Source: Wallemia ichthyophaga EXF-994
Taxonomy: Eukaryota; Fungi; Basidiomycota
Direction: 5' to 3'
Length of the DNA stretch: 32,000 nucleotides
Assembly (NCBI RefSeq): GCF_000400465.1
Contig: NW_008806278.1
Span: forward strand, 202,592 to 234,591
This document shows, piece by piece, positions 3,001 to 30,580 of the stretch; within the stretch, counting starts at the first letter, position 1, and each line of letters begins with the position of its first letter. The translations under genes were made by a program, and so were the position numbers. The notes beneath the pieces were generated by a model. It was not told the DNA's origin, did no database searches, and saw only the letters and a list, made by a program, of their open reading frames with translations.

Positions 3001-5753
3001 GTCACTATTTGATTGCTTGCTGTTACTGTCAACAATTTACACTAGCAGAGGATCTTCAAGAGAAGCAGGTTTCTTTCTTGATCAGGCTTTCGAGCTCACA
3101 GAAACGTTAGCATCGCCAAACTTTAATGCAAAGATCAATGCAGCTAAGGCAGAGCTTAATATGTCTTTGTCTAACTTAGATGAAGCTAAGAAAGAGATTG
3201 ATATGGCTTTACTTTCGTTAGGTGGACAAGATGACACAGAGTCGTCTGTTTTGATCAAGAAAGCGAAAGGAGACTTACTGTTCAAGTTACAGTCTAACGT
3301 TGATGCATCCGCAGGTTATCTTTCTGCTTGTCTAATTTTGGAGAGATTAGACAAAACTTACAGTGAAGCAGAAACACTGTTTACATCACCCAAGAAGACT
3401 GTTAGTGCTAAAAGTGAATCCAATCTTTTAACGGACTATGATCCATTACTACCTGATATTTTTGGACATTTGTTGCGTCAAAGAATATGGCTGCTTAGTG
3501 AAGACGAGAAGAATAATGAAAGCCAAAAGCTTTTGGATAGGTTGTTCGATTTTCCAGCAACATCAACCAATAAAGCAGAAGAAAATATGCTTTTAGGTAA
3601 AATGCGATTAAGAGAGGCGTATAATAGCTTCCAGAGTGACTTGTTTATGTCGTCTCTATCAGATGCTTGTGAGTATGGAAAAAATAGAGCACTGACCTTG
3701 ATGTTGATAAGAATACAGTGATATCAATACCATGTGGATCAACGTCAAGTAATACTTCCAATCGCTTGACATCGCGCCAACCAAGCATAGAAACATTAGC
3801 GGATGCTGAAAAATTTTTCACGAGTGCACTCGAATTGAATATTGATAGGGCTCCTGTTAAAGACATTAGACAGGCTTGTCTAGCAATCGCATTAATCAAA
3901 TCATTTCAAACATCACTTGGTAAGGTTAGTAAAAGCAATTCAACATTAGCAGCGGCATACTTAGATCTTGGGTCGGCCATTACATTACGTAGAGAGCTTT
4001 TGGAGGTGATTGATAATAAATTGGCTACTAATGAAGCTCGAAATGATATGAATTGGCCTGCTATAGATCAACTTAGTTCAATGAGAATGCTCACACCTTT
4101 AAATAAACGATCAAAGAAGTTGTTCATGCCTTCACCTTCACCATTAGGGTCACCAATGTACGAGAAAGACAATCTTTTTAACGAGGATCTAAAGATCAAC
4201 AAGTACTGGGAGGGTGTAAGAATGAGGCACGTTAAGGAGTTTTCAGAACCTGAGCAGGGTGTGCGCGATACTATCAATAAATTACCAAGGAACTTTACAG
4301 TAATCTCAATATCAATAACCGATGATAAAAAAACAATGTTCGTTGTGAAGTACAGAAAGAATTTAGAACCGTTGGTAGTTTCACTACCTTTAGACAACAG
4401 ACAAAACAAGCGTGAAGGTGGCGGAGAAGAAGGAGCATTTACTTATATGGATGCAATGAATGAACTCGAGAGTGTCATTGAAGAGAGCGATGATTCAATC
4501 AAATCAGCAAGTGATGGTAATGTCAAAAGTGATGATGAAAAGGTTGCATGGTGGAATAAGCGCAAAACATTAGATTCAAGGATGAGACAATTGGTGAAGA
4601 ATATTGAGTTTTGTTGGTTAGGAGTATTCAAATCATTGTTTATCAAACCAACTGCAACGTCAGAAAGTGCACTTAATGGATTGAGAGGATGTCTCGAGAA
4701 AGTATTTAAGAAGCATATCCATACCAGCGGAAGAAAGAAGCCAGTTACTAAAGTGAAGTTGGATGATGCATTACTAGAATGCTTCTCAGCTTTATCTACA
4801 AATTGCAAAGATGAGGAGCTTGAAGACTTGATATACTTTGTTTTAGATATCTACTTATTCCATGGAATACAATTAGCGCTTTCGGAGATTGATATTGATC
4901 AAGCCACAATTGATATTCGTAGCGCATTGGAAGAGTATCACAATAAGTATGCTGATAATAAAGATGAAGGCAAAGTGGAGCATACCTTTATAACATTGGA
5001 TAAGTTAACACAATCTATGCCATGGGAATCTATACCTGGATTAAGAAATCAAAGTGTTTCAAGGATACCATCAGTAGGTTTCTTGAGAGATAGACTAGAT
5101 TATATCAATTTCTTGAATCAGGATAGATTATATGTCAATCCAAGGAATACTTACTGTTTGATTAATCCTTCTGGAGACTTGAAGCGAACAGAAAAGAAGT
5201 TTGGCGGATGGTTTGAAGAAATGAAAGCATTTGGATGGAAAGGTATAGTTGGGAGAGAGCCACTTGAGGTGGAGTTGTCGAATGCGTTAGAAACATCAGA
5301 TTTATTCATCTACTTTGGACATGGAGGTGGACAGAAATACATTAGATCACAGAAGATAAGGAATATGCCCAAGTGCGCAAGTACGATGTTATGGGGATGC
5401 TCATCAGGATCATTGAAAAGCAATGGAGATTTTGACAGTAATGGCAATCCAAACAACTATCTGTTGGCCGGATGTCCTTGCTTAGTAGCTAATTTGTGGG
5501 ATGTCACAGATAGAGAGTGAGTGGAAAGTTGGACGAAAAAGCGATTACTAATAGATGTGATAGTATTGACAGATTATCAGAAAGTGTTTTAGATAAAATA
5601 GGATTAAACAGCGAGTCAATGAGGAGTGAAACTGTTGGAGAGAGTATAACATTAACACAATCAGTTGCAGAATCGCGAAGAGAGTGTAGATTGAAGTATT
5701 TAACAGGTTCAGCTGTTGTGGTTTATGGGATACCGATTCAATTGAGAAGATAG
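1..5753 (+). CDS. ESP1: Separase (peptidase C50), 5' end lies upstream of the window; spliced
   Basis: Track ORFs join through GT-AG introns at 784-827, 2576-2613, 3669-3718 and 5517-5563. The C-terminus carries the catalytic motifs YFGHGGG and LWGCSSG plus NLWDVTDRDIDR after splicing. Stop at 5751-5753. Confidence 0.95.
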
Positions 5754-5808
5754 AAGATTGTTGTATAGTACATGCTCAATAAATGGAATACAGAGATTAA
5801 AAGGATGT

Positions 5809-6235
5809 TTAATAAGTAAGAGGATGTATCGGCTCTGCCAAAATATTTGTCCAATCTTGGTTGTCGTCTATATCGGTATCTAGTTCAGAAGCACAGACTC
5901 TAAAGATATGGATGAGTGGAAGCGCAGGAGGAATAAAAAAAAACTCACAAGTTATCGCCTTTAATGAGGTACAAACCTAGAGGGACAATCTCGACGCCTT
6001 CATCTTTACTGAAAACACGTTCAAACGACGAAGACAGTATAATGTTTGATTTATCATCAAAGCCTTGTAATAGACCCTTTGAAGAGGTTAATAATTTTAA
6101 TTTATTTGGCGACTTCTTACTAAAATACATCTACCATCCGTTGTTATCAGTAGCAGTTTCTCTGAATAAGGGATTAGTGTACAAACGAAACCAAGAAATC
6201 AACTGACTGTTAAAATAATTACTTAATTCACTCAT
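5809..6235 (-). CDS. LSM8: U6 snRNA-associated Sm-like protein Lsm8; 4 exons
   Basis: Manual splicing gives MSELSNYFNKKLLLITTDGRCIL-GLLQGFDDKSNIILSSSFERVFSKDEGVEIVPLGLYLIKGDNL-VCASELDTDIDDNQDWTNILAEPIHPLTY*. Sm1/Sm2 motifs and the C-terminal AEP motif fit Lsm8 better than Lsm1. ATG at 6235-6233. Confidence 0.88.
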
Positions 6236-6241
6236 TTAACA

Positions 6242-6634
6242 ATGTCGGCTATTTTCAATTCTACAAAGTTTAAAAACAAGAATCAACTCAAATTATATCA
6301 ACTATTTTTATTGAATTTACAGTTGGATGAGTTGGATAAGGCTAAAAGGGCTATTGCCTTGTTGATTAGACAGAATCTATCAAGCCATTTATTATTCGAA
6401 ATCCTTGATTTCATTGATTTGATAGATGACGACGATATTTTAAACATATTAAAAGTGCTAGTTATCAAGCAGAATAATGTTCACCTTCTGAAGTACTATT
6501 TATACTCGCTCATCAAGCATGACAAATTGTCAGAAAGTTTTCAGCATTTAGAATTTTATATATATTCTCAGCCATTTACGGAAGATGACCAACTACAACG
6601 ATTACATAAGCAATTATCAGCCACTCAGCAATGA
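6242..6634 (+). CDS. 130-aa protein, possibly a minimal Rrn11/TAF1A-like RNA polymerase I initiation factor
   Basis: Intronless ATG-to-TGA ORF. LYQLFLLNLQLDELDKAKRAIALLIR and HLEFYIYSQPFTEDDQL resemble, from recall, the conserved helices of fungal Rrn11-family proteins. Confidence 0.5.
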   Translation: MSAIFNSTKFKNKNQLKLYQLFLLNLQLDELDKAKRAIALLIRQNLSSHLLFEILDFIDLIDDDDILNILKVLVIKQNNVHLLKYYLYSLIKHDKLSESFQHLEFYIYSQPFTEDDQLQRLHKQLSATQQ

Positions 6635-7107
6635 TTAGAATATTCACCAGGCCATCTACTAGGTCATTTTCTTCCACCAGGCTTCTTAGAAGCGACCCGT
6701 ATAAACTACCTTTCGATCCATCACTATCTTCTTCCTCTCAATCTCAAGATCTAGATGAAACGTTATTCCCCCAACCAATCAAACGACACAATGAAGACAT
6801 TCACAAGAAAAGAGCAAGATTGATCTATCAATCAAGGCACAGAGGTACCTTGGAATCTGACCTCATCTTATCCACCTTTGCTAAGGATTATTTACCATCA
6901 ATGACTCTAAACGAGCTTATTGAATTCGATCAACTAATGGATGAGCCTGACTGGGATATTTATTATTGGTCTTTAGATCGTAAGCAACCGCCTGCGAAAT
7001 GGCTTAACCACCCCTTATTAAATAAACTTAAATTACACGTTCAAAATCACGACAAGGTAACTAGATTCATGCCACCAATCAATCAATTTTATAATAAGTC
7101 ATCTTAG
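6631..7107 (+). CDS. SDH5: Succinate dehydrogenase assembly factor 2 (flavinylation factor)
   Basis: Arg/Ser-rich mitochondrial-type presequence, then KRARLIYQSRHRGTLESDLILSTFA and EFDQLMDEPDWDIYYW motifs of the Sdh5 family. Confidence 0.95.
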   Translation: MIRIFTRPSTRSFSSTRLLRSDPYKLPFDPSLSSSSQSQDLDETLFPQPIKRHNEDIHKKRARLIYQSRHRGTLESDLILSTFAKDYLPSMTLNELIEFDQLMDEPDWDIYYWSLDRKQPPAKWLNHPLLNKLKLHVQNHDKVTRFMPPINQFYNKSS

Positions 7108-8121
7108 CATTCTTGTTCTCTCCATCAATGCATCTCTTGGCTCTATCTTATATCCTCCACCCCATCTCTTCTTTAAATTATTATTGCTGCCTTTGTGACC
7201 CTGTTGCGATCTCAAGAACATCTGAAATTCCTCAATCTTATTATCGTCTATCGTCATCCTTTGATCTACACTTCCTCCACCGGCTCTGTTCCCAACATTC
7301 CTCATCATCCACAAGAATCCTAGCAAAACTAATATCAACATAGCGCCTCTTAGCCCTATCTCATTTGCAAACCCTTCTAATATCTCTGCAAACGCTGCTG
7401 CCCCGACTCTTGCTATGCCCACTGTCGTCGGATCCCTGTGCATACATTGCTCAAAATGTATACATGCGTCTTCACTAACTGGTACCCTCGTCGATGGATC
7501 ACATTGATTTAGCGCGTATGACCTCGCACATGCTGATGATTCTGAGTTTAATGACTGTACGTATACTTCTACTTTGTGCTCAACGTCTTTTAATATCGTT
7601 CGTACTAGTTTGAATGCTAATAATGATAAACCTAATAGTAAGAATAAATTGAAACCCATTTGTGCATAAGTTGATAATAATTTTGGTATATCTTGTTGGT
7701 ATCTATAATCTAATCTATCATCTTCGTCTTTTGTATTCTCCTTGCTCTGTTGATTTCGTATTCTCTTTTTACGCATTTTATTAACTGCGCTATTAGAAAC
7801 CTTCAATTTATTGTCTTCATTACTCGTACTTAAGTCTGTCATTTCAACTTCACCTAAACCGAGCGATGCTTTAACGTCCCATTTAAAATTATCATAATCT
7901 TTCTTCTCAATATCAGCATTATTAGGCTCAACATCCACTTTATTGAAAAGGAATGGCGTGTTGCTCCCAACCAAATTACTCCTTCTGTCATCGTCTTTGA
8001 ATGTTACGTTTTCATTGCTTCTAAAGCTCATCTCATTATCGTATTCATTATGCGTTCTTTTCAATGGTCTATCACTGTATTTAAAATCCATAGGCGCTTC
8101 CATCGACCGACCGAAAGACAT
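7099..8121 (-). CDS. BRL1: Nuclear envelope protein Brl1/Brr6 family
   Basis: N-terminal EAPMDF motif, two hydrophobic segments flanking the four-cysteine Brr6-like domain (CARSYALNQC...C...EQCMHRDP). First ATG at 8121-8119; the track start at 8136 is a TTG. Confidence 0.9.
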   Translation of the reverse strand: MSFGRSMEAPMDFKYSDRPLKRTHNEYDNEMSFRSNENVTFKDDDRRSNLVGSNTPFLFNKVDVEPNNADIEKKDYDNFKWDVKASLGLGEVEMTDLSTSNEDNKLKVSNSAVNKMRKKRIRNQQSKENTKDEDDRLDYRYQQDIPKLLSTYAQMGFNLFLLLGLSLLAFKLVRTILKDVEHKVEVYVQSLNSESSACARSYALNQCDPSTRVPVSEDACIHFEQCMHRDPTTVGIARVGAAAFAEILEGFANEIGLRGAMLILVLLGFLWMMRNVGNRAGGGSVDQRMTIDDNKIEEFQMFLRSQQGHKGSNNNLKKRWGGGYKIEPRDALMERTRMLR

Positions 8122-9008
8122 CGTCGCGGTTAACAACCAAGGGAAAGATATATGTGAATATCATTGGTTATTTTTAAAAAAAACTTTAATCTAATATTAC
8201 TCAATACACGTCGTATACACGTGGATACATATGCCAAAACTCCGTCGATACATCTCACCAACTCAAACAGAAACAGTGTGGTAAGAGAATCTTTTGAATA
8301 TTGTTTACAATCAGCAAAAAGCTGGGCTGGTTATACTGTGCTTCCTGTGCGGACGTCATCTGTAATGCTAGATGTTAGTGGACGAAGATGCACAGCAGAT
8401 TTGAATTCTTGAATATTGAGATTAGTTATTTCAGCATATTCAAACCCGGTTGAACACGGCTTCCGTACTTCTAGCTACCTTTTTCATGATGATGATATAT
8501 GGGCAGACACCCACCAGGGGATAACGTTATCTATCAGGGTAAATGTATACATCGATAAAAAGTTGTTGAACATTTGCATGCGTCGATCTACCTTTCATTC
8601 AATCGACTCTGGTTACTTAATTGATACGTTCCACGAAGGCAATCATTGCGAAATTGGGAGGTGCTACATAATAAAGTAAGTCATCAAAGCTGTTTCAAAG
8701 AAGTTTGTTTCTTCATCTCATATTTGCAACGTCAGTTGTCGAGTATATCCAACACATTGAAAGCTTTCGATTTTATCAGGCCTTTTAGAGCTTGTTGGGA
8801 TGTTTCAGGATGTCCTTAGCTTGGTAAAGTAGCTCAAGATAAGACTTGATATGTCGATTTCAGCGTCTTCCAAAGAGCTAGCAGAGTTTAGTTTTTCACT
8901 TGAGGCGCTAAATGCGATGACAGAAGAAAACTGATTACAGTCAGCAGTGTATTTCAGCTACAGCCAAGAGTAAATTGCGTTTGCAGGTACTACAAAATGC
9001 CTCCTTCC

Positions 9009-12000
9009 TGTCCACAACTTTGTGTTGATCGCAGATTTTTACAATCGGATACAAAGCACCCATCGTTATCTTTCTCGAAGTTTGCTACTGCTGTGGCGAT
9101 AATCTTATTCGCAAGATAAACACAGTTGGTCTTAACGCTGCCACCGCTAAGTCGCATTACTAGCGAAATGATTGTATAAAGATTATTAAACACATTCAAT
9201 ACATGTTATAATGCATAAAGATTTTGCCATATCTCTCGTTGCAGTGCACAACCATAAAATCATACTAGTCGGCTCTACATCATTATGACTTCAGGACAAG
9301 TTTTAAGTTAGCAAAAAGGTTCAAATGCTGAAAAAAGTATTTAAGAATTATTGAAATAGTATAGGCTATTTTTTCGAATTGAAATTGCTCGGCTTATCCT
9401 GAAAAATATCAAGTAAGTGCGATGATGAGTACATTGAAATGGTGTGCTAGCATTATCCTTAGAAAAAATATTTTATTCTAAGCCTGCCAACATTATGATT
9501 TTACTATTTAATCATTCATTCACTCAATATTATTATATTAGATTTTCCTTCTATCAGACATCTCCAAAAAAGGAAATTATCTTATAGCTCTAGTTCAATT
9601 AAAAACTATTTGCTAGACTTGAAGCATTTGAGTACCAATTCCACCCTGTAAGCTGATTGAAGGGACCATTTTGATATGAATCTGAAACAAGAAATAGAGC
9701 AGACACGGAAGCACTTACGTGCTTAACAATGCAAAGCATCTTCATTGAATAAAATATTCTATTGTTGCTCAATACCTCAAGCATAGCCTTTCTAGGTGTG
9801 TGCTGCAGATCTGGACCCGCGACTTTCACATTATTCGATTTCGTTTCCTCACGTGTATATCTGTACGCTATAGATTTTAGTAGTGTAAATTTCAACCAAA
9901 TTCAATAGTAATATTAAAGAATATATTTTAACGAGTTGCATCAGAAAAAGGCTAACTGTGCAACCTTTTCAACTAGGTACGGGATGCGCAGAATGACTTT
10001 CATATCGGTCATATCAGGCAGAACTTCAAATTATCAGGCTAATGTATACAGAAGAGAGACATTAATATTTTGCAGACTTTTAAATCCCTTATTTCTGTGT
10101 TGTTCTCACCCATATCACGCATATTTGGACATACGATTCCCATTTTTGGCTTGAAGGTTCAAACGCGATTTATGGTGCGAATGAGGTTTGATTAGATGAA
10201 AATAATGTAAGAAGTGTGTGATAAAGTTCTAAACTCATTAAATTGAGTATTATAAATAGAATAACTCGCATTTCATAGGTTGTGCTCTATGCCAATATCA
10301 CGCAAACAGATGAGCCAGCTATTTGGGGGTTTCAAAGTGTGCTTTTATTGAAGTATTGAATGTTTGGAAAGTATTAAATCATTTTGAAAAGTATTAAATC
10401 ATTGTGCAACTGTGTTTTTTTAGGTGATTTTTGAGAAGAATGGTATAATCAAATCGAGTGACAAAGGAGGAAGTAATTGCGTGGAACATGGATGGGAAAT
10501 GACATTAATAAATGTCTGGTGTTTTATATTCGACGAAAATTTAGTTGGACACAGCCTTTTTGGAGGTCTGTGACGCAATGCTTCGCATCTTCACTCAGCA
10601 GATCAGCAGATGACATCACGAAACTTGAAAACCTTCAAAGCCCTTTTGGCTTACTTATACTAATAATATTTGATCTTGGTGGTACAGAGGAGCTTGATTT
10701 TCCGGTAATCGCTGATCTAGCTAGGGTATTCTGCCCTCATTGATGTCAGGAAGTGAAACCAAATTCATGTGATGCTGCATTGCACTTTCATCAAGACCAA
10801 TAAAAACGTGCGTTCACTTTATTAAGTTTCCAACTGATTACGTGTGTTTGCTGTATAATCGCTGAACAAGCCATTATTCAACTCAGCAGTGTTAGGCCAC
10901 GGACTCGGATTGATTCCAGCCTATTGTTAGATACTCATACTTCTAAGGGAATTTGAAGGCGTTAAGCTCTTTTTATTATAACAATTTGGGTATCGTTATG
11001 TGATAATCAGAATCGCAACCCAACTACTATTCAAAAGAACAAGATGCGTACATTGACTTCGGATACCATCCATCTTAACCACGAGTCCTCAGTGAGACTC
11101 TCAAATCCTTTACCTTAGTTTTCAAGGTAGTTTCAGCGGTGCGCACTCAATAGCCTTTCTTTTGTACGAAGGGTGCGCTAAAGATGTCATAGTTCCACTT
11201 GAGACCTCAGGGGAAGCAGTAGCAGCTGATGTTGATAATCGATGTCGTTCATAAAATGTAGCTTTTCAATTACGAACGATATCTTTTTGCGCAAGAAAGT
11301 GACCCTGAGACTCAAGACTACTAACGGTTAACCCGAGAATTCTGTATTCGTTGAGCATAACATCCTGCCAGCTTACGACTGAGTACCTCTTTCGGTTATG
11401 ATTGACCCATTCATCCAATAAATTCCAAGAAATCCCTATGCATTAATGGGGATCGAGATCCACCCACAATTCAACCAATCGGCATGCACTAGATTAGGTT
11501 ACAAGTATGAGCAATTGCAAAATGCCTAGATTAGATACACATCAGGCCTACTTTAATTCCCAAAATACGCAAAACCCTATGCCCTTATCGGCATGGAAAT
11601 TCATGCATTATACTCTCAACGTAACCCGTGCACTAGTATAAGTTTAATGGAAGTGTGAGTAATTTCAATAACAGTTGTACATATGATTGCTAAGCTTAAT
11701 TTGGTGTATAGGCTGTTGGAAGCTGAGCGTGTTGGCTTAGGTTTTGCTTAAAGATGAAGACGTGATGTTGGTACCTGATTTAAAAAGGTGGCCATGATTG
11801 TAAGCCGTTAATGTGTCTAACTAGAACGATGTACCACCTATAAACTTTTATACAATCGCTGGTGTATGCTCCCCACTGAGCTGACACAGGCAGAAGGAAT
11901 TAGGATTCATATAGGTTTAATACTGTTTCAAGGCCGTAAAGTTCCCAACGATTCTAGAACACAACTATGAATTCATCATGACACATTAATTACATTCGAG

Positions 12001-12487
12001 CCGCTCAATGATTTCATCGTTGCTGCCTATATGCTTACTTTTTGCGATTCGCACGATGGCTTACAAATCGATAGGAAAAAACAACAAAACCTCAATATAA
12101 GTACAACTACAAGTGAGAAATAATAAAAAAATGGTACTCAATTCATTATATAGGATAAAACGAGAGCGTCCAAATTAATATGAACTAAAGCCAACCAGTA
12201 AATGCCCATTGCAACCTGTTAATTACTTTCAGCGATAGCGAACATCTAAACTTCGTGGTCGTGTATTTCATGACATAAAGCTTGCCTCTAAACTATAACT
12301 CAAAAATCGCTAGTTTGGTTCATAACAGACATATTTGAAGTAGCCTACTACATCGTTTGTGAAAAGAACACTTTCGTTCAGATTGAATCTTGAATCAAAC
12401 TAATGAGAACGTCCGCTGTCAGTATCACAATTATCGAAAGTCATGTTATCAGCGTTATATCAGCATGTCGGCTGTGAATTGAATGAT
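9009..12487 (+). repeat. Left arm of 3,479-bp inverted repeat
   Basis: Position x mirrors position 26176-x at both ends and at every internal point checked (9009/17167, 9199/16977, 9895/16281, 10743/15433, 11041/15135, 11701/14475, 12121/14055, 12487/13689). Four short ORFs translate the same in both arms up to the repeat boundary. Confidence 0.98.
10350..10404 (+). repeat. Short degenerate tandem repeat (AAGTATTAAATCATT core, ~19-20 bp period, ~3 units), mirrored at 15772-15826
   Basis: gaagtattgaatgtttg-gaaagtattaaatcatttt-gaaaagtattaaatcattgt. Confidence 0.7.
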
Positions 12488-13688
12488 CGAAGAAAGTCTA
12501 TCACATGGGCATAGTAGAACTGGGGGTTAAATAATTGTAGTTCCTCATTCTTATCAAACCCACGGTAATACATGTTTTTTATCATTGAGATCAATATTCA
12601 AACATTAACATTATTTTACTCGTTGTTGTAGACCCCGAAACATGCATTTTATTATGTTTTGATTTTACCTTGCTATCGAATAACGTTGTTACCAACGTTT
12701 AGCGAAATGCAAGCAAAGAAAGTTCCCATACATGATCTAGGTTTAGTACACGAGGTTGTCGGATTAGGTTAAAATGAAGATATTGTCGTTCGAAAATTCG
12801 AAAATGCTATAAATTCTAGTCGTTAATTTATTTCCTTCAACGATTTAGAGAATCCATAACCTACATACTAAGAATCTAATTTTCTCAGGTAGTAAAATTG
12901 AGATATTATTTTACTCAACTTGAAGATCCGTCGATTTTAAAACATTCCTTTTTTGAGGGCATTCAAGACAAAAAGTCACGCGACATTGATAACGTTTGTT
13001 ATGTTTTATCTGTAACTACATGTGGGTAATAGTATAATGATAAGTCCGCTTAAGTGATAAAGACATTTGTCATACAAGATGTGATTGTGTAAATTTACTG
13101 ATAATAATAAGTGTATTTTATAATATGACGTTTACGATCTCCGTTAGCCTCATTTGCATATCTAAATGACCTAACTTAGCTTTTCTGTAAATTTCTTACG
13201 GGATTTGAATAATAAAGATCTGATCACTGTTCTGCTTGTGAATAGGATATATATTGGGCGATTAGTCTATATAAAGAGGTTTCAAACTCATTTGTTTAAA
13301 ATTCTTTCCTGTTTTATCATTCGAAAGAAAAATCTAATGTAATTATCAATTTAAGGGTATGCCGACCGTAGCTTTCAACATATTTTAGACGTACAATCGT
13401 AATCACTTAACCCCACTTTAAAAACATTTTCCTCGCTAGATCATTTTCAAATTTTTACAAAACTTGCTAGGATGCTGCAAACGACACTTTGAACAAATAA
13501 CCAGGAACATTCTAATCGAATGGTAGTTGGTTTTCGTTTAGCAGGATTAATTGTAGCATTCAGTAGAAAAAACAAAAAAACAAAAAAACCAACAGTAAGA
13601 TGTTTTGGTACTGCCTCTCTCGCATGAGACATTCAGCTGATAGTAATCTTGATAAGAGCATGCCTAGCTATTTATTAGTAACTATTTC
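12488..13688. other. Unique 1,201-bp AT-rich spacer (central core) between the inverted arms
   Basis: Hand count over 12541-13680 gives 362/1140 G+C (about 32%). No ATG ORF of note. A-tract run at about 13566-13588. Confidence 0.9.
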
Positions 13689-16600
13689 ATCATTCAATTC
13701 ACAGCCGACATGCTGATATAACGCTGATAACATGACTTTCGATAATTGTGATACTGACAGCGGACGTTCTCATTAGTTTGATTCAAGATTCAATCTGAAC
13801 GAAAGTGTTCTTTTCACAAACGATGTAGTAGGCTACTTCAAATATGTCTGTTATGAACCAAACTAGCGATTTTTGAGTTATAGTTTAGAGGCAAGCTTTA
13901 TGTCATGAAATACACGACCACGAAGTTTAGATGTTCGCTATCGCTGAAAGTAATTAACAGGTTGCAATGGGCATTTACTGGTTGGCTTTAGTTCATATTA
14001 ATTTGGACGCTCTCGTTTTATCCTATATAATGAATTGAGTACCATTTTTTTATTATTTCTCACTTGTAGTTGTACTTATATTGAGGTTTTGTTGTTTTTT
14101 CCTATCGATTTGTAAGCCATCGTGCGAATCGCAAAAAGTAAGCATATAGGCAGCAACGATGAAATCATTGAGCGGCTCGAATGTAATTAATGTGTCATGA
14201 TGAATTCATAGTTGTGTTCTAGAATCGTTGGGAACTTTACGGCCTTGAAACAGTATTAAACCTATATGAATCCTAATTCCTTCTGCCTGTGTCAGCTCAG
14301 TGGGGAGCATACACCAGCGATTGTATAAAAGTTTATAGGTGGTACATCGTTCTAGTTAGACACATTAACGGCTTACAATCATGGCCACCTTTTTAAATCA
14401 GGTACCAACATCACGTCTTCATCTTTAAGCAAAACCTAAGCCAACACGCTCAGCTTCCAACAGCCTATACACCAAATTAAGCTTAGCAATCATATGTACA
14501 ACTGTTATTGAAATTACTCACACTTCCATTAAACTTATACTAGTGCACGGGTTACGTTGAGAGTATAATGCATGAATTTCCATGCCGATAAGGGCATAGG
14601 GTTTTGCGTATTTTGGGAATTAAAGTAGGCCTGATGTGTATCTAATCTAGGCATTTTGCAATTGCTCATACTTGTAACCTAATCTAGTGCATGCCGATTG
14701 GTTGAATTGTGGGTGGATCTCGATCCCCATTAATGCATAGGGATTTCTTGGAATTTATTGGATGAATGGGTCAATCATAACCGAAAGAGGTACTCAGTCG
14801 TAAGCTGGCAGGATGTTATGCTCAACGAATACAGAATTCTCGGGTTAACCGTTAGTAGTCTTGAGTCTCAGGGTCACTTTCTTGCGCAAAAAGATATCGT
14901 TCGTAATTGAAAAGCTACATTTTATGAACGACATCGATTATCAACATCAGCTGCTACTGCTTCCCCTGAGGTCTCAAGTGGAACTATGACATCTTTAGCG
15001 CACCCTTCGTACAAAAGAAAGGCTATTGAGTGCGCACCGCTGAAACTACCTTGAAAACTAAGGTAAAGGATTTGAGAGTCTCACTGAGGACTCGTGGTTA
15101 AGATGGATGGTATCCGAAGTCAATGTACGCATCTTGTTCTTTTGAATAGTAGTTGGGTTGCGATTCTGATTATCACATAACGATACCCAAATTGTTATAA
15201 TAAAAAGAGCTTAACGCCTTCAAATTCCCTTAGAAGTATGAGTATCTAACAATAGGCTGGAATCAATCCGAGTCCGTGGCCTAACACTGCTGAGTTGAAT
15301 AATGGCTTGTTCAGCGATTATACAGCAAACACACGTAATCAGTTGGAAACTTAATAAAGTGAACGCACGTTTTTATTGGTCTTGATGAAAGTGCAATGCA
15401 GCATCACATGAATTTGGTTTCACTTCCTGACATCAATGAGGGCAGAATACCCTAGCTAGATCAGCGATTACCGGAAAATCAAGCTCCTCTGTACCACCAA
15501 GATCAAATATTATTAGTATAAGTAAGCCAAAAGGGCTTTGAAGGTTTTCAAGTTTCGTGATGTCATCTGCTGATCTGCTGAGTGAAGATGCGAAGCATTG
15601 CGTCACAGACCTCCAAAAAGGCTGTGTCCAACTAAATTTTCGTCGAATATAAAACACCAGACATTTATTAATGTCATTTCCCATCCATGTTCCACGCAAT
15701 TACTTCCTCCTTTGTCACTCGATTTGATTATACCATTCTTCTCAAAAATCACCTAAAAAAACACAGTTGCACAATGATTTAATACTTTTCAAAATGATTT
15801 AATACTTTCCAAACATTCAATACTTCAATAAAAGCACACTTTGAAACCCCCAAATAGCTGGCTCATCTGTTTGCGTGATATTGGCATAGAGCACAACCTA
15901 TGAAATGCGAGTTATTCTATTTATAATACTCAATTTAATGAGTTTAGAACTTTATCACACACTTCTTACATTATTTTCATCTAATCAAACCTCATTCGCA
16001 CCATAAATCGCGTTTGAACCTTCAAGCCAAAAATGGGAATCGTATGTCCAAATATGCGTGATATGGGTGAGAACAACACAGAAATAAGGGATTTAAAAGT
16101 CTGCAAAATATTAATGTCTCTCTTCTGTATACATTAGCCTGATAATTTGAAGTTCTGCCTGATATGACCGATATGAAAGTCATTCTGCGCATCCCGTACC
16201 TAGTTGAAAAGGTTGCACAGTTAGCCTTTTTCTGATGCAACTCGTTAAAATATATTCTTTAATATTACTATTGAATTTGGTTGAAATTTACACTACTAAA
16301 ATCTATAGCGTACAGATATACACGTGAGGAAACGAAATCGAATAATGTGAAAGTCGCGGGTCCAGATCTGCAGCACACACCTAGAAAGGCTATGCTTGAG
16401 GTATTGAGCAACAATAGAATATTTTATTCAATGAAGATGCTTTGCATTGTTAAGCACGTAAGTGCTTCCGTGTCTGCTCTATTTCTTGTTTCAGATTCAT
16501 ATCAAAATGGTCCCTTCAATCAGCTTACAGGGTGGAATTGGTACTCAAATGCTTCAAGTCTAGCAAATAGTTTTTAATTGAACTAGAGCTATAAGATAAT

Positions 16601-17167
16601 TTCCTTTTTTGGAGATGTCTGATAGAAGGAAAATCTAATATAATAATATTGAGTGAATGAATGATTAAATAGTAAAATCATAATGTTGGCAGGCTTAGAA
16701 TAAAATATTTTTTCTAAGGATAATGCTAGCACACCATTTCAATGTACTCATCATCGCACTTACTTGATATTTTTCAGGATAAGCCGAGCAATTTCAATTC
16801 GAAAAAATAGCCTATACTATTTCAATAATTCTTAAATACTTTTTTCAGCATTTGAACCTTTTTGCTAACTTAAAACTTGTCCTGAAGTCATAATGATGTA
16901 GAGCCGACTAGTATGATTTTATGGTTGTGCACTGCAACGAGAGATATGGCAAAATCTTTATGCATTATAACATGTATTGAATGTGTTTAATAATCTTTAT
17001 ACAATCATTTCGCTAGTAATGCGACTTAGCGGTGGCAGCGTTAAGACCAACTGTGTTTATCTTGCGAATAAGATTATCGCCACAGCAGTAGCAAACTTCG
17101 AGAAAGATAACGATGGGTGCTTTGTATCCGATTGTAAAAATCTGCGATCAACACAAAGTTGTGGACA
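13689..17167 (-). repeat. Right arm of 3,479-bp inverted repeat
   Basis: Reverse complement of 9009-12487. Begins ATCATTC (13689) and ends GTGGACA (17167); identity stops abruptly beyond these points. Confidence 0.98.
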
Positions 17168-17539
17168 AGATAGATTGTAGAAGAAAATGTTTATATTTAA
17201 TCAAGTGGGCCCCAGAAACCCGCAATATGTAAAATTCTAACTAAAAATGCAAGTTATGTTCCAGTCACGATTAGAAGCAAGTAACAACGTTTTTACTTTA
17301 TACGGTAAAACCCCGCAATGCTGTAACCCTTACATGTTAGATGCCTGAGCTCAGTAAGTGATTCATGGGGTTATTTCTCTCTCATTAAAAATAGGATTGT
17401 GTCTCAACAAATGGGGTAAGGGACATTCAGAGATGGACTGAACTATTGTGGTGCTGCAACTTCAGCTGTATATCATGTATACGTTTAAAATCATAAGAAG
17501 TGGTATATGGAAGGGAAATTTCGTAACTGGAGGTATATA

Positions 17540-18109
17540 CTACTCTAATCTTTCTAAATACTCGAGTCTGTTTAAAATGACCTGCTTTGAAGTCTCTTCA
17601 ATTTCACCAGCTAGAAAGACTTCATCAAGGATTGCATACACCTTGTAAAAATTAAAAACTAGATCCAGTTCACAGACGTTTGAAAAGAAAGCATCTAACG
17701 CGAAGTTAGAAACTCTAACTGAAGATAGATAATCTCACCTAAAACCTCAACAAAGAGGTGAATGATTTCCAAGTAAGCGAGCTCATTGTCATTTGCATCT
17801 ACGCAAACACAGAAGAAGAGACCAGCGTATCGCCTGTAAACGACTTTGTAATTCCTGAATTCGACAAAGTTACTTTGATGTTTTTGATCACGAGGGGCGA
17901 CCAGTCTGTGAACCTCGCCGCGTAGCTTAATCTTTTAAGACCTTTAGTTGATAGAAAACGATACAGTCGATAATAGACGTACTTTGTCCTCATCTTCTAC
18001 CGGGACGTACCACTTTGATAATCTAGTTTTGCCTTGTCTGTTCTTTGGGCATATTAGACGTATACTGGGATAATTTAGAACTCACTTGAACTAAAATGAA
18101 TCTCAGCAT
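17540..18109 (-). CDS. APS2: AP-2 clathrin adaptor complex sigma subunit; 4 exons, absent from the ORF track
   Basis: Exons 18109-18086, 18042-17983, 17931-17739 and 17694-17540 give [143 protein letters not shown]. Confidence 0.96.
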
Positions 18110-18252
18110 CGACGACGTTTTGGTGCAAGAGGTGAATGTATTTGCAGAGTGCTATCTACAGCTGAAATCTATTTATTATTTAAATTGCAATACATTCAGC
18201 TTTATCCTTCTATCCTCGAAACCTCCTTACCTTCCTCCATCATCATCTCAAA

Positions 18253-19504
18253 ATGTCAAATAATCAGCAAAATCAACAGAATCTAACTCCAGAGCAGATG
18301 CTGCTCATTCAGCGTCATATGGCAAATCAGAGAGCTCAAGCTGCTCAGCAGCAGCAACAAGCTGCGATGCAACCAAATACACCAACACAGTCAAATCAGC
18401 AGAATCAATCAGCTCAACCAGCTCAAGCATCACAGTCTCAACCGGGAACTCCTCAAAATCCACAACAAAGCCAAATGATGCAAAATATGCAAAGTATGAT
18501 TCAACAACTTCCTGCACTTCTGGAATTGGCAAGAAGAGGCTTACTCAATCCCGAGCAAATGAATCAATTGCGTGGTTTAGCAAGATTACATGAACAACAA
18601 AAAGCTCGACAAGACCAGCGTAATGTACTGTCTAGAAATGCTAGTGTTGCACAAGCTCAAGCAATGCAGCAACAAAGGAGTGGTAGTCCAGCACTACGTA
18701 GTAGTGCTAGCACACCTAATCCAAATGGTAGAGGTGGTACACCAATACCTCGTACAGCGTCTCCAGCTGTTGGCAGTATGACTGGTATAGCAACCCCCCC
18801 ACCAAATTCATTACCAGGACAACAAAATACCAACACATCGCAAAGCAATATGTCAGCCGCCATACAATCACAACTCGCAAATAGCAACAATCAGTCTTTA
18901 CCTATTAATGACAAGGTTCCAAATATGAATTTTCAAGCTGAATCATTCCCAAATCAACAGGGCTCCAGACCAACATTGAATTCAGGACTAGCAAGTGGAA
19001 CCGTATTAGGACAACCTTCTACCATGCAAAGAGGGAATTTACCATCAAACTTTGATGAATTGATTGGTGGTATGGGTAATGGGAACAAAATTGATACAAA
19101 ATCCATGTTAGAGAATGACAACAATAGATTATTAGGTAAACGAAAGATTCAAGAATTAGTTGAAACTGTAGATTCAAAGGAAAAGTTAGAGCCCGAAGTC
19201 GAAGATTTAATGCTCGAAATTGCAGACGAATTCATAGACAGTGTGACAAACTTTGGATGTATGTTAGCAAAGCATAGAAAGGGTGATACGCTTGAAGTCA
19301 GAGATTTACAGTTACATTTAGGTTGGTCGATATTTGAATTATCTATTATCATGACTGACGTGAAATCTACAAGAGCGCAACTATAACATTAGAATACCAG
19401 GATTTGGTACGAATGAAGACAGTAGAATAGGAGCAAGAAGACAATCACAACCACAATCTTATCAGAATAGATTGAATGCAGTACAAAGCACACAGAATAA
19501 GTAG
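18253..19504 (+). CDS. TAF12: TFIID/SAGA subunit TAF12
   Basis: Q-rich N-terminus and histone fold ([12 protein letters not shown]...[29 protein letters not shown]...DLQLHL). Intron 19322-19373 continues into [11 protein letters not shown]. Stop 19502-19504. Confidence 0.95.
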
Positions 19505-19514
19505 ATGTAATAAA

Positions 19515-20837
19515 TTAAGTTAATATGAATGACGCATTGTTGTAATAATCTAACATGGGGTTACTACCATCTAATAATTTAGTTTGATTGACTTCTATAG
19601 CATTTGATTGAATGAAATCTCTATGGCTTAGTATTCTAACGTCCCTATTAACTCTACTTGAAGTGGATGACTTTGATTGAGTGACTCGAGTATATAGTTG
19701 AGCGAGTAGCTCAAAGTTTGTAGGAAAAAAGATATCAAAATGTCCCGGCTGAACTAAGAAAGTATCAACAGGAATCATTTCACCATTCAAACGAGTTTGA
19801 ACGACGGGCGAATTGATACCTGGTATAGATTGAGGTAAGGAATGAAAATCTGAAGCTATCAAGTGATGATGTGGGAAAGACGAGGATAACTTATCTAAAA
19901 AAAGAAGTTGCTTTGTCGGGAGAAATTCCTGTTGAGATAAGTTTGGTAGGAAAGGAATGAATTTGGATAAATAACGGAAAACAGGGGATTTTGCCCATTG
20001 ATTGGATTGTAGCGACGGAAAAGAAGACGATAAATCCAAGTAACGAAGAATCAAAGGGTCATTAGCAGGAGAGTATAAGGAGTGAAAGTCACCTTGATCG
20101 TCCACTGCTATATATAATTGATAAGGAATTGGAATTTTCGAGTCGTTAGAGTATCTGATAACATCATGTGCGAGATTATCAAAGACTTCCATCGCTAAAA
20201 AGTAGCAAGGTTGATGATGAACTGAATTAATATCAAAGAATGATTTATTGATGATGTTTATATGTCTAGAGTGCTGCGATAACAATCTACGTTGAATCGA
20301 TGATAATCTGTCACTGATTTCAATGACATTGTAGTAAGTTCTATTGTATATCTGTGGATGATGAGATTTCAAGTGATCAAGGATGTTTAACATTAAAGTG
20401 CCATTACCTGCACCAATTTCGAATAAATTCAAATCATGATGAGGGTAGTAATACGCTAAGTAATGATTGATGATGTAATTCGCAATAGCTTGACCATAAT
20501 GAGGATTGAATAATTCTGTTGGTGTATGCCATTCTGATGATTTTGATGAATTAATCGACAACAATGATTGCAACTGACTATCATTCTTAACCTTGTTAAA
20601 TTCAATGTTCTTGTATTTTATGATGTCAACATTCTTATTGAAATAGCCGTAGTTTGGATTGTATAAACTATCATCAATAAAGTCCCTTGCAAGAAGTTTA
20701 CATTTAAACGGCCTCTTTTTAAAATTCTTCAATTGATTTGAGTTCAGTAGTCTACAATTTATTAATTTATCGTCAACTTTGCTATCGAATGATAGTTTAT
20801 TGTAGTTGAAGTTGCACCTTCTGAGTGATTGCAACAT
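19515..20837 (-). CDS. SAM-dependent methyltransferase, MidA/NDUFAF7 (DUF185) family, probably mitochondrial
   Basis: RDFIDDSLYNPNYGYF, HTPTELFNPHYG, EIGAGNGTLM and MEVFDNLAHD motifs. Confidence 0.88.
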   Translation of the reverse strand: MLQSLRRCNFNYNKLSFDSKVDDKLINCRLLNSNQLKNFKKRPFKCKLLARDFIDDSLYNPNYGYFNKNVDIIKYKNIEFNKVKNDSQLQSLLSINSSKSSEWHTPTELFNPHYGQAIANYIINHYLAYYYPHHDLNLFEIGAGNGTLMLNILDHLKSHHPQIYNRTYYNVIEISDRLSSIQRRLLSQHSRHINIINKSFFDINSVHHQPCYFLAMEVFDNLAHDVIRYSNDSKIPIPYQLYIAVDDQGDFHSLYSPANDPLILRYLDLSSSFPSLQSNQWAKSPVFRYLSKFIPFLPNLSQQEFLPTKQLLFLDKLSSSFPHHHLIASDFHSLPQSIPGINSPVVQTRLNGEMIPVDTFLVQPGHFDIFFPTNFELLAQLYTRVTQSKSSTSSRVNRDVRILSHRDFIQSNAIEVNQTKLLDGSNPMLDYYNNASFILT

Positions 20838-20871
20838 TAGCGGACTTCCTCGAAGTTGATGGTGGTTAAGG

Positions 20872-21199
20872 TTAGAGGGGGTGATTAATTAATTCTATGA
20901 GTTTATTTTCATTTATCTTATGCCTCATAACCTCTTCTTCATCAATGTGTAAAACAGGTACGTCGTTCTATTTGTTTTGAGCCAGCTTCTACTTATATAC
21001 ACTAACTTACTTTATACATACTTCTCCAGTACTCTACGCCTTGCAATCTATCATCCCTTATGTTGAAATACTCCAGATTGAACTCATGTTCCCTCTTCAC
21101 GCTCTCTAGCGCTACCTTGGCTTCCTCGCAAAGGCTACACTCTTTGCCACCCGTGTATAGCTTCAAATTTGGTTTACATCTTATCAGACTTCTCAACAT
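20872..21199 (-). CDS. Glutaredoxin-like protein (DUF836 family), 94 aa, 2 exons
   Basis: CSLC (CxxC) motif. Intron 21010-20968 joins MYK to NDVPVLHID. Stop TAA at 20874-20872. Confidence 0.85.
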
Positions 21200-21285
21200 T
21201 CCCTAACGCTGCAACTTGGTGGATGATGCAATCTATTCAATTTAATTTCAAACTCATTTAGTATCACTCTTTAAATTACTTTATC

Positions 21286-23022
21286 ATGTCCAATAGTAAT
21301 TCTAAGCAAAGCATCCTTATCATTGGCGCTGGGTGCTCTGGAATGGCTGCTGCGTACTCTCTTTCGTTACAACCACAGAACTACAACGTCACTTTAACTG
21401 ATAAGTCTCACACTTTGGGAGGCAGTGCTACAAGCTATGAGCTAGATGATCATCTTTTCGGTGCTGATTATATCAATGATGGCGTACAAGGCGCAAGTCC
21501 GGTGTTTCACAACACCCTATCTATGTTTGAGTCTGTACTGGGCTTTAGAGCAAGTGATGTTGGTATGCAAATTAGCTTCGGAAATACTGTGGACTCCTTT
21601 TGGTCAAACGTATTCCCATCTCACCTCGTCGACCAGTTTCAGCAGGATATCAAGAAGGTTAGTCGTGCTGATGCACTGCATCCCTTCAAACTCACCCTCA
21701 ATTTACAGTTCGGTCGTGTTTTGAACACTATTAAACGCTTTGAAATCTTTTTCGCTCTCATACCCGTGGACAAAATGCTTAAAATATTCAATTTTCACCC
21801 TTCCTTTGGTGATAGAATGGTTTATCCCCTGGTTGCCTTATTTTTTGGTACTGGTAATGAGACTAAGCATATTTCTTCCGCTATTCTTGAACGAGTCTTC
21901 CTCGATCCATCGATGAGGTTGTTCGAATTCAGTGAAAAAAGTCTTTTGGCAAGCGTACCGCATATGAAAGCTTTTCCTGAACTGTCGCGTATATATGGAA
22001 AATGGAAATCCAAAATTCAATCTAACGGAAATGTCAAAATTCTTGCTTCAAATCAAGTTAACAGCATTGAAAGAGGAACAAAGGAAGCGAAAAACGCTGG
22101 TGGTAATATAAGGGCTTCTTTAACTGACTTAAAGAACAGTCATCATCGTTTCGAGTCATTCGATCAGGTCATCTTCGCATGTGATGCTGACAGCGCTCTC
22201 AAAATCCTTGATGCCGGTTCAGGTTCAACATGGCGTGAGAGGAAAATTCTTGGAAATGTCTTATACAAATGGGACGTAACCGTAACTCATCACGATTATG
22301 ATTACATGCGTAAGAATTATCAGATGACGTATGACTCAAAATACAACGCTGAAAGATACGACCTAGATAGTAAAAAGGCTTTTGAATTTGCTCAAAAGCA
22401 CTGGAGACCATTATATCTTATCAAAATGTATGAAGAGGATCCTTCACAAGTTGAAATGAGTTTTGATCTAACCCATTATCAAGGTCAATTTGAGGGCATG
22501 CCATCAGTAGGAACAGATGCAGATCTAAAACCTCAAGATGCACCACCAACTGAACGTCAAGCAGGGAATCAAGGCAAGGAGCACTCACAGAGTGCAACAT
22601 CAGATGGTTCTCAGCATATTGAAAGAGATAAAACGCTTCCAGTACCTAAAAATCATGTCTATCAGACAATCTATCTCGATCAGGACTCCAGCGATCGTTG
22701 GACAAAATATCAAGTTAATCGAGATAAAATAATATTAGAAAAGTGGTGGAAACAGCAAAGTCATCGATTCCAGCATTATGCTGGAACAGTTCCATGGTTA
22801 TGGACAATAAACGGGAAGAACAATACGTGCTTTGCGGGGGCATATACTCTTGTTAACATGCACGAAGTTGCTATGGTATCAGGATTTTCAGCAGCATACC
22901 AGCTAGGCGCGCCATATCCGTTTAAAGACGATGAAAACTGTGCAAGACTGTTCAGGCTTTATCTCCTATTAGCGCATATGTCACGCATGCGCAGTGAAGA
23001 TCGTAGCGGATTTTTCAGTTAA
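21286..23022 (+). CDS. FAD/NAD(P)-binding oxidoreductase (flavin amine-oxidase-like)
   Basis: N-terminal IIGAGCSGMAAA Rossmann motif and C-terminal FAGAYTLVNMHEVAMVSGFSAA. A probable in-frame 51-nt intron at 21658-21708 is read through by the ORF track. Confidence 0.85.
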   Translation: MSNSNSKQSILIIGAGCSGMAAAYSLSLQPQNYNVTLTDKSHTLGGSATSYELDDHLFGADYINDGVQGASPVFHNTLSMFESVLGFRASDVGMQISFGNTVDSFWSNVFPSHLVDQFQQDIKKVSRADALHPFKLTLNLQFGRVLNTIKRFEIFFALIPVDKMLKIFNFHPSFGDRMVYPLVALFFGTGNETKHISSAILERVFLDPSMRLFEFSEKSLLASVPHMKAFPELSRIYGKWKSKIQSNGNVKILASNQVNSIERGTKEAKNAGGNIRASLTDLKNSHHRFESFDQVIFACDADSALKILDAGSGSTWRERKILGNVLYKWDVTVTHHDYDYMRKNYQMTYDSKYNAERYDLDSKKAFEFAQKHWRPLYLIKMYEEDPSQVEMSFDLTHYQGQFEGMPSVGTDADLKPQDAPPTERQAGNQGKEHSQSATSDGSQHIERDKTLPVPKNHVYQTIYLDQDSSDRWTKYQVNRDKIILEKWWKQQSHRFQHYAGTVPWLWTINGKNNTCFAGAYTLVNMHEVAMVSGFSAAYQLGAPYPFKDDENCARLFRLYLLLAHMSRMRSEDRSGFFS

Positions 23023-23141
23023 ACGTGATAGTATTGTATTACAATTCCAAGTTATTTGCATCATGAAATGAAAAGAATTCTTGTTTTCGCGACGCGTAGT
23101 GAATCATCTCGTTCTGGCGATCAACACTTAAATCAAATCGG

Positions 23142-25222: not shown

Positions 25223-25239
25223 ACATGTACACCTAATTA

Positions 25240-26427
25240 TTATGAATTCTTCATATATTTATCAAAGTTTGCCCAACGTTGTTTAGTTTCGATTAATGTT
25301 TGTTGAGTGACATTGGCAACGCTGACGCGCAGATGGTAATTTGCATCATTTTTGTCATCGGTAGTGAAAAATGAACCAGGTAATGTCAAGACACCGAACT
25401 CTTTCGAAAAAATAGAGGCAATCTCGATTGACGATTGAGGAAATGGGTATCTAATAAAGGCGTAATAGGCACCAGATGAGGATATTTGCCAACCATTCAA
25501 ATCCTCAATGATTGACTTGAGTAGAAGATGTTTCTCTAAAAGAGATGTTTTCTGAAATTGTTTAAACTCACTCAAGTCTTCATAGATCGGTGCGATTGCA
25601 GATTGGGCTAAATTTGAGGATGAAATTTGGTAACAATCAGATATCTTTAGACATTGATGAATGAAATCATTGTGGGCGACAATGGAACCCAGTCTGAGAC
25701 CAGGTATTGCCAAATCCTTAGAGAAAGAATGTAAGGATATGAGATTCGGGAGTTTCGTTGAGTATAGAGAGTGAGGTTGGGTAAAAGAACAAAAAGATCT
25801 GTAAGTTTCGTCCAAGATAAGAGGAATGTCATTGTCCGAGCAAATACGCAAGCATTGCTCAAGTATTGAAGAAGGTATTGATACGCCAGTTGGGTTGTTG
25901 GGAGTGACCAGAACTACAGCTCTTGTGTTCACATCAATTAATTGAGTCAGACTATCTGGAACTGGTATAAATGAGTTGACGGATTGGCAATCCAACAGTT
26001 TCGTTGCGACGCCTAACTGAGAGAGAGTCATTTCATGATTGAAGTAGAAGGGAGATTGTAAGATAACATTATTATTCTCTCCAAATTGGATTAAAGCTAA
26101 AATACTTGTGTAAAATGCAGCATTTGCACCTGGTGTAATCAAAAGGTTATCAGTAGATAACGTTGACTTGTAGTAATCGTTGAGATCTTTTGAGAATGCG
26201 TCCTTGAAGGCAGGGTGTCCAGATATATCACCATATTGATAAACGCTATTCGTTGTACTCCGCCTTGATAACTCCTGCTGCAGTAACGGAGAAGGAGGAT
26301 CAATTGGAACACCTTGTGAAAGATTATAAGAAACTTGACCTTCAAATTCAGCTAGCCATTGCTTGGCTTGTTGAATCGGAGGTAACTTGGAATTAATAAG
26401 CGTCCTCGACAGTTTAAACCCAACCAT
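25240..26427 (-). CDS. PLP-dependent aminotransferase class I/II, intronless
   Basis: NLSQGVP, VTPNNPTG, LDETY and SFSKDLAIPGLRLG (PLP lysine). First in-frame ATG at 26427-26425; the track start at 26454 is a GTG. Confidence 0.9.
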   Translation of the reverse strand: MVGFKLSRTLINSKLPPIQQAKQWLAEFEGQVSYNLSQGVPIDPPSPLLQQELSRRSTTNSVYQYGDISGHPAFKDAFSKDLNDYYKSTLSTDNLLITPGANAAFYTSILALIQFGENNNVILQSPFYFNHEMTLSQLGVATKLLDCQSVNSFIPVPDSLTQLIDVNTRAVVLVTPNNPTGVSIPSSILEQCLRICSDNDIPLILDETYRSFCSFTQPHSLYSTKLPNLISLHSFSKDLAIPGLRLGSIVAHNDFIHQCLKISDCYQISSSNLAQSAIAPIYEDLSEFKQFQKTSLLEKHLLLKSIIEDLNGWQISSSGAYYAFIRYPFPQSSIEIASIFSKEFGVLTLPGSFFTTDDKNDANYHLRVSVANVTQQTLIETKQRWANFDKYMKNS

Positions 26428-28586: not shown

Positions 28587-28665
28587 AATCATTGCATGTA
28601 CAATTTTGGCATCTTTCGTTATGTAGTGATTTCTAAGTTTAAAATTTTGCTTGCTTCATTGTTTA

Positions 28666-30470: not shown

Positions 30471-30580
30471 TATTTTTGCACCGGTTCCTGGCCTTGGTCG
30501 TTGGTTGTCTACTCACACACCGCGCGCTTTAAAATTTCAAATCAAACCTTCTTTCTTCTCTAGCAGACACTTGAATTAAA

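Follow-up and report, generated by a model that had tools for sequence, protein, structure and literature searches.

A near-perfect inverted repeat around a unique AT-rich core in a gene-free interval of Wallemia ichthyophaga is a candidate centromere

A 32,000-nucleotide (nt) stretch of contig NW_008806278.1 from the basidiomycete fungus Wallemia ichthyophaga EXF-994, hereafter the window, whose positions serve as coordinates throughout, holds a large inverted repeat: two arms of about 3.5 kb enclosing a unique core, all within an interval between a gene for a Brr6-like nuclear-envelope protein and one for a clathrin-adaptor (AP) sigma subunit. A repeat search of the whole window returned exactly one inverted repeat and zero long direct repeats. 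Below we describe this element, its setting and its counterparts in related species, and weigh its interpretation as a small, repeat-defined centromere. A first-pass annotation, made from the letters of the window and its open reading frames (ORFs), had ascribed the DNA to a Wallemia-like basidiomycete; this agrees with the match of the window to W. ichthyophaga scaffold KE007228.1, since positions 8253-29504 are 100% identical to the EXF-994 reference (GCA_000400465.1) and the encoded TAF12 is 100% identical to the W. ichthyophaga protein. The repeat has three parts:

9006-12487, plus strand: left arm, 3,482 nt, guanine-plus-cytosine (GC) content 36.9%, complex non-coding unique sequence
12488-13688, no strand: unique central core ('mid'), 1,201 nt, 32.1% GC, predicted CENP-A seeding site
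13689-17170, minus strand: right arm, the reverse complement of the left arm with a single mismatch at 17168

Compared base by base, the arms differ at one position, the third counted from the outside (9008 in the left arm, 17168 in the right), and their likeness drops off abruptly at the outer as well as the inner ends. The perfect part of each arm (9009-12487 and 13689-17167) measures 3,479 nt with zero indels, and arm, core and arm together span 8,165 nt. These values coincide with those of the first-pass annotation, which had reported 3,479-bp arms without net indel around a 1,201-bp unique core of about 32% GC. Base composition declines from 38.6% GC in the whole window to 36.9% in the arms and 32.1% in the core, the latter being the GC minimum of the window, and the window contains 0 ambiguous bases (N). 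A perfect inverted repeat of 3.5 kb cannot have arisen by chance. On scaffold KE007228.1 (544,189 bp) the structure occupies about 211.6-219.8 kb, with both scaffold ends more than 200 kb away.

Tandem Repeats Finder (TRF) detected no tandem arrays in the arms or core except two minor features. A 20-nt unit, TTTGRAAAGTATTAAATCAT, stands in tandem duplicate in each arm (10363-10402 and 15773-15813), where nothing else is repeated internally. The second feature, at 13566-13592 close to the right edge of the core, is an A-rich tract (AAAAAACA x3). A 16-mer related to this tract occurs once per arm, at 12075-12090 and, as its mirror, at 14086-14101.

The interval that houses the repeat extends over 9,418 nt. 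On the left it is limited by the start of the Brr6-like gene at 8121, and on the right by the AP sigma gene, whose 3' end is at 17540. Its margins and nearest genes are as follows:

7099-8121, minus strand: Brr6/Brl1-like nuclear-envelope protein gene, the left boundary; Pfam PF10104, E=8e-34; 340 amino acids (aa)
8122-9005, no strand: left unique gene-free flank, 884 nt, 38% GC; ORFs without Pfam match
17171-17539, no strand: right unique gene-free flank, 369 nt
17540-18109, minus strand: clathrin-adaptor (AP) sigma subunit gene, the right boundary; PF01217; 9288-9857 in the reference annotation, here shifted by +8252
18253-19504, plus strand: TAF12, the 20-kDa subunit of TFIID; PF03847; identical to the W. 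ichthyophaga protein, as noted above

Transcription of the Brr6-like gene, whose 340-aa product is also present in Logan contigs, points away from the repeat, and its promoter presumably lies in the left flank (8122-9005); the AP sigma gene faces the repeat with its 3' end. The first-pass annotation's description of about 9.4 kb with no recognizable gene withstood every search that we made. No gene is annotated within the interval in the EXF-994 reference. With ORFs listed down to 30 aa, the longest in an arm reaches 98 aa and none in the core exceeds 61 aa, stop codons recur about every 15 codons in all six frames across the interval, and the ten longest ORFs have no Pfam match. ARAGORN found no tRNA genes and Rfam, at the gathering threshold, no families anywhere in the window, and a tblastx comparison of the complete interval with five related loci and with the two flanks of the window revealed no similarity. 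Genes restart 0.4-0.9 kb beyond the arms, and the packed neighbors on either side encode separase, LSM, Sdh5, TAF12, NDUFAF7, an amine-oxidase-like protein, a kinesin, an aminotransferase and Mon1. The other spacers of the window, as read from the ORF and gene tables without exhaustive tabulation, are about 0.5 kb or less. The W. ichthyophaga genome comprises 9.6 Mb with 4,884 genes, is 73.6% coding and 1.67% repeats, and has a GC content of 45.35% (PMC3849046); a gene desert of 9.4 kb is exceptional in a genome this compact and poor in repeats.

A comparison across the genus, for which orthologous loci were gathered by way of three proteins, TAF12 included, places this desert in an evolutionary frame. 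The most informative relative is a sister Wallemia species represented by Logan run SRR25399871, with 80-82% DNA identity to W. ichthyophaga; at the protein level it is nearer to W. ichthyophaga (83-89%) than W. hederae is (78-81%). Single blastn alignments that run through intergenic spacers match its contigs to window positions 1-8141 (82%) and 17475-30724 (80%), and these alignments, 8.2 kb and 13.5 kb long, both break off at the edges of the gene-free interval. Beyond these points the sister contigs continue for 2.0 kb and 2.3 kb that match nothing anywhere in the interval of the window, and then end; they contain no tandem arrays. At the gap, one contig end of the sister is the reverse complement of the other along 53 nt, with full identity in the last 30. 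Such reverse-complement ends are the signature that the outer edges of an inverted repeat leave in an assembly at k=31, and so point to an inverted repeat at the same site. The sister species thus carries its own inverted repeat in this gap, with a sequence unrelated to that of W. ichthyophaga.

In W. hederae (SPNW01000110.1) the AP sigma gene is followed by 3.5 kb without genes, at 40% GC versus 48% in the rest of the locus. This gene-free stretch (locus piece 1-2876) is filled with the arrays (TTTCTGCA)~216 and (TGCAAG)~67 together with several of 10-44-nt periods, and the contig ends inside the first of its tandem arrays. The W. hederae Brr6 gene is located elsewhere, among other genes. No similarity was found by blastn (word size 7) among the gene-free stretches of W. 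hederae, the sister species and W. ichthyophaga. Upstream of the W. hederae Brr6 gene (locus positions 6530-10000) lies another 3.5 kb of unannotated sequence, at 47.5% GC and with ORFs of 225 and 326 aa; we considered whether this gap might be the DEAH helicase gene that occupies the position in a more distant Wallemia and rejected the idea, since tblastx gave no match and Pfam recognized nothing in the ORFs.

The locus is a synteny breakpoint when set against W. hederae, W. mellicola or a more distant Wallemia. A conserved position with replaced sequence is borne out in the sister species, and W. hederae keeps a repeat block beside AP sigma; W. mellicola does not follow this pattern. From these comparisons the gene desert is specific to the ichthyophaga-hederae clade, within which it stays with the AP sigma flank as its structure and sequence change quickly.

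We judge the chances as somewhat better than even that, by analogy with known systems, the locus is the centromere of the chromosome represented by KE007228.1, of the small repeat-defined type seen in Komagataella phaffii, Candida tropicalis and the imr-cnt region of Schizosaccharomyces pombe. What makes this plausible is that the locus resembles the centromeres of K. phaffii in size, in the near-identity of its arms, in lying on a gene-free site of a compact genome, in its local GC minimum and in a conserved position whose sequence turns over fast. Among the attributes of a repeat-defined centromere, the locus displays near-identical inverted arms of a few kb and a unique core of about 1 kb or more, in an arrangement that is taken from a short-read assembly and agrees with the contig breaks in eleven other assemblies. 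We infer that the kinetochore would assemble here, that there would be one such locus per chromosome and that core and arms would have distinct roles. In a mechanism that we transfer from K. phaffii and S. pombe, CENP-A (Cse4) nucleosomes would be kept on the unique AT-rich core of 1.2 kb and tail off along the 3.5-kb arms, which would delimit the CENP-A domain inside the non-genic island of about 9 kb and keep the kinetochore off the packed neighboring genes. Gene conversion within the chromosome would maintain the identity of the arms, and crossing-over between them would invert the core. The sequence itself would be unconstrained and hence turn over fast between species, with position and inverted-repeat design persisting.

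The closest parallel is provided by CEN1-4 of K. phaffii, which combine repeats 2,012-2,699 nt long, showing 0-1 differences, with mids of 883-1,330 nt, lie in non-transcribed islands of 6-9 kb in a compact genome, and have been proven by chromatin immunoprecipitation sequencing (ChIP-seq) of Cse4 (Coughlan et al., 2016; PMC5010909). The Wallemia locus shares with these a simple inverted repeat of a few kb, 0-1 differences between the arms, a mid that is unique and close to 1 kb (1,201 nt in Wallemia), a site in a rare non-genic island of a compact genome, the absence of satellites or retrotransposons, and arm and mid sequences that are unique to the locus. It differs in its longer arms (3.5 kb versus 2.0-2.7 kb) and in its host, a basidiomycete of the Wallemiomycetes rather than a budding yeast. 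Cse4 binding, early replication, the occurrence of one such locus per chromosome and polymorphism in the orientation of the mid are features shown in K. phaffii.

C. tropicalis likewise has a mid core between inverted repeats a few kb long. As cited in later accounts, its repeats matter for centromere function on plasmids, and all of its centromeres are mutually alike, at >60% identity (Chatterjee et al., 2016, cited in PMC5010909 and PMC7292649). For the Wallemia arm, the assemblies examined gave no sign of a second copy at other junctions. The central domain of S. pombe, in which cnt is flanked by imr, also places a unique core between inverted repeats; these repeats are chromosome-specific and identical within a chromosome, and CENP-A sits on the core and spreads into them. 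S. pombe centromeres are bounded by tRNA genes. They further possess outer (otr) heterochromatic repeats extending over tens of kb, whereas the Wallemia locus has neither outer repeats nor tRNA genes.

Among basidiomycetes, the centromeres of Malassezia carry a shared AT-rich sequence motif. They occupy a gene-free region of 3-5 kb that spans an AT-rich core and is situated at synteny breaks, in a compact genome of about 9 Mb comparable to that of Wallemia (PMC7025860). Set against criteria of this type, the Wallemia core has 32% GC versus a genome mean of 45% and its site is at a synteny breakpoint; a large inverted repeat, by contrast, does not figure in the description of Malassezia centromeres (Sankaranarayanan et al., 2020; PMC7025860). 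A further parallel comes from budding yeasts, whose centromeres have been described as 'conserved in location but not in structure', with 8-mer arrays at the centromeres of Barnettozyma (PMC12711049). In Barnettozyma and other Phaffomycetales, inverted repeats or tandem 8-mer arrays occur within one clade at conserved locations, much as the W. ichthyophaga repeat stands against the W. hederae (TTTCTGCA)n array beside AP sigma. Unlike Wallemia, these are Ascomycota with locations mapped by Hi-C or ChIP, and the Wallemia comparison is one of synteny with a single flank gene only.

Several observations weigh against the centromere reading. The EXF-994 reference was assembled with SOAPdenovo at k=21 from Illumina libraries of 500 bp and 2 kb, and because the largest insert (2 kb) is shorter than the 3.5-kb arm, no read pair spans an arm; the linkage from flank through arm, core and arm to flank is an inference from the assembler graph, never directly observed in reads. 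The inner junctions between arms and core are unconfirmed elsewhere: exact look-ups of the 98-aa arm and 61-aa core ORFs returned no record, and the 27-nt inner end of the arm had 0 matches when metagenome contigs of the Joint Genome Institute (JGI) were scanned. W. mellicola has no gene desert beside either flank gene, its AP sigma gene being followed directly by Dim1 and CPSF73, and a more distant Wallemia likewise lacks one, a DEAH helicase directly preceding its Brr6; the locus is therefore not anciently conserved. The synteny breakpoint is weak evidence, because rearrangements between Wallemia species are frequent (PMC3849046). Finally, the AT-richness is modest, as an ordinary 500-nt stretch that includes intergenic DNA (6001-6500) has 30% GC. 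On balance, the proposal of a centromere made in the first-pass annotation gains from the inverted repeat of the sister species, the W. hederae block, the breakpoint, the GC minimum and the K. phaffii-like dimensions, and is tempered by an arrangement that comes from a short-read assembly.

The low GC of the region is not confined to the repeat. The whole window is GC-poor (38.6%, with genes at 39-40%) against the published genome mean of 45.35% and coding-sequence mean of 47.5%, and climbs to 44-48% only at its right end (30.5-32 kb). In the relatives, the orthologous flanks of W. hederae have 48% GC and the sister species is low too, at 37-38%. Either a pericentromeric trough in GC or a regional drift specific to the lineage may account for this window-wide depression.

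Of the competing explanations, the one that survives best, though we consider it unlikely, is a non-centromeric palindromic duplication, that is, an inverted segmental duplication of intergenic DNA. Under it, a fold-back or template-switch event during replication produced an inverted second copy of 3.5 kb, and gene conversion preserves the identity of the two, with no kinetochore role; the locus would be neutral or, for example, that of a long non-coding RNA or a replication origin. Arms that differ at a single base at their outermost end are what a young duplication would show, and the lack of a gene desert at the locus in W. mellicola and a distant Wallemia fits as well. Yet the site would have been gene-free over at least 5.9 kb before the duplication, in a genome whose spacers are about 0.5 kb or less; W. 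hederae retains a gene-free repeat block on the same flank; and the sister species, some 20% diverged, has in this gap an inverted repeat that is unrelated in sequence. This last point favors a maintained design over a one-off recent accident.

It is quite improbable that the structure is an artefact of assembly or scaffolding, in which SOAPdenovo placed one collapsed repeat contig twice and the true arrangement has one arm only, more than two copies elsewhere or unlinked flanks. The two short-insert libraries, the small k and the 3.5 kb that no pair bridges would all permit such an error, and the identity of the arms save for one outer-edge base may partly reflect one collapsed repeat contig used twice. 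The other assemblies moreover all break at the arms, none crossing them, and the population assemblies were guided by the same reference. The way in which they break nonetheless speaks against an artefact. We read 11 assemblies of other strains, ten covering the right flank and one the left, and each stops at the outer edge of an arm. All eight IDBA-Hybrid strain assemblies that were read (maximum k 120; there are 7-8 more similar places among 17 protein-carrying contigs) reach 122 nt into the right arm and end there, at 17049. On the same side a Logan assembly (k=31) goes 33 nt into the arm, to 17138, and a second contig like it exists; on the left side another Logan assembly ends at about 9038, about 33 nt inside the left arm. 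In the strain assemblies read, the outer end of the arm adjoins two different unique flanks in opposite orientations; eleven assemblies thus break exactly at the outer edges, entering the arm oppositely from the two sides, and the arm is truly a repeat in other strains. The core is single-copy, and both of its ends join the same arm end with zero N. Given two arm copies and these junctions, the only path that fits is flank-arm-core-arm-flank. To this the sister species adds an independent de novo assembly with the reverse-complement junction signature at the same gap.

The strain assemblies also provide a view of local variation. The first kb beside the right arm (17049-18048) has 12 segregating sites among seven other strains, versus about 4 per kb further out, and one strain has a single-nucleotide polymorphism at 17143, inside the right arm.

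Less probable still is a non-autonomous DNA transposon of the foldback type, one whose terminal inverted repeats are very long and whose insertion site lies between the Brr6-like and AP sigma genes. A geometry in which such repeats enclose a short non-coding middle suits it, and the genome holds about 85 kb of DNA transposons (PMC3849046). There is, however, no target-site duplication at 9005/17171, and no direct repeat is common to the flanking sequences ...ATGCCTCCT|arm and arm|TAGATTGTAGAAG...; no transposase and no Pfam match appear among the ten longest ORFs of the interval; apart from the 20-nt doublet, the arms lack the internal sub-repeats typical of foldback elements; and in the assemblies examined the outer arm edge lies next to these two flanks only. 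The sister species, furthermore, has an inverted repeat of different sequence at the site, and its similarity to W. ichthyophaga is lost across the whole interval and not just an insert. Two other identities were rejected: a subtelomeric repeat mis-joined by the scaffolder, as TRF found no telomere-like array in core or arms and the core ends are complex unique sequence, and a mating-type (MAT) switching cassette, as genes of the STE3, HMG and homeodomain kinds are all missing from the window and the MAT locus has been described with other neighbors.

If the locus is indeed a centromere, the type of structure is already known, and the Wallemia instance is a candidate that would be new for Basidiomycota. 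To our knowledge, the confirmed inverted-repeat centromeres are all from Ascomycota, namely Schizosaccharomyces, Komagataella, C. tropicalis and its relatives, and Barnettozyma, and the centromeres known to date in basidiomycetes consist of transposon clusters or of short AT-rich regions. The first-pass annotation had regarded the design as undescribed in this phylum; our searches of the literature on Wallemia centromeres, Wallemia inverted repeats, long-read Wallemia assemblies and basidiomycete inverted-repeat centromeres found no report of it, which is consistent with that view as absence of evidence only. The literature searched likewise yielded no CENP-A or CENP-C ChIP-seq and no Hi-C data for this system. 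Transposon-cluster centromeres were the commonest class (34 of 49 fungi) in a 2026 atlas that sampled 32 basidiomycetes. The Wallemiomycetes are an early branch of Agaricomycotina, near the point at which most proteins of the CCAN (constitutive centromere-associated network) were lost (Sridhar et al.), and the inverted-repeat design may be ancestral in ascomycetes (Coughlan et al.; PMC5010909).

More broadly, we propose tentatively, putting the chances a little short of even, that inverted-repeat centromeres exist outside Ascomycota, that W. ichthyophaga and its sister use a K. phaffii-like arm-core-arm structure, and that it has been replaced in situ within the clade, as in the 6- and 8-mer arrays of W. 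hederae. If this is true, the design would either be ancestral to Dikarya or recur whenever a compact, transposon-poor genome must fence a small CENP-A domain. Verification in Wallemiomycetes would accordingly move its origin back to the Dikarya ancestor or provide a clean case of convergence. It would also make W. ichthyophaga, the sister species and W. hederae a three-species series for the replacement of centromere DNA at a fixed position, and would supply the first centromere map for a 9.6-Mb extremophile genome nearly without transposons.

Two minor observations concern the neighboring genes. An exact look-up of the 158-aa Sdh5 ORF returned no record. The separase gene (840-5753; Peptidase_C50 at its C-terminus) is divided among four ORF pieces (840-2579, 2624-3721, 3718-5520 and 5517-5753), and the splits, a gap of about 45 nt and changes of frame, are consistent with the short introns of this genome (mean 61 nt).

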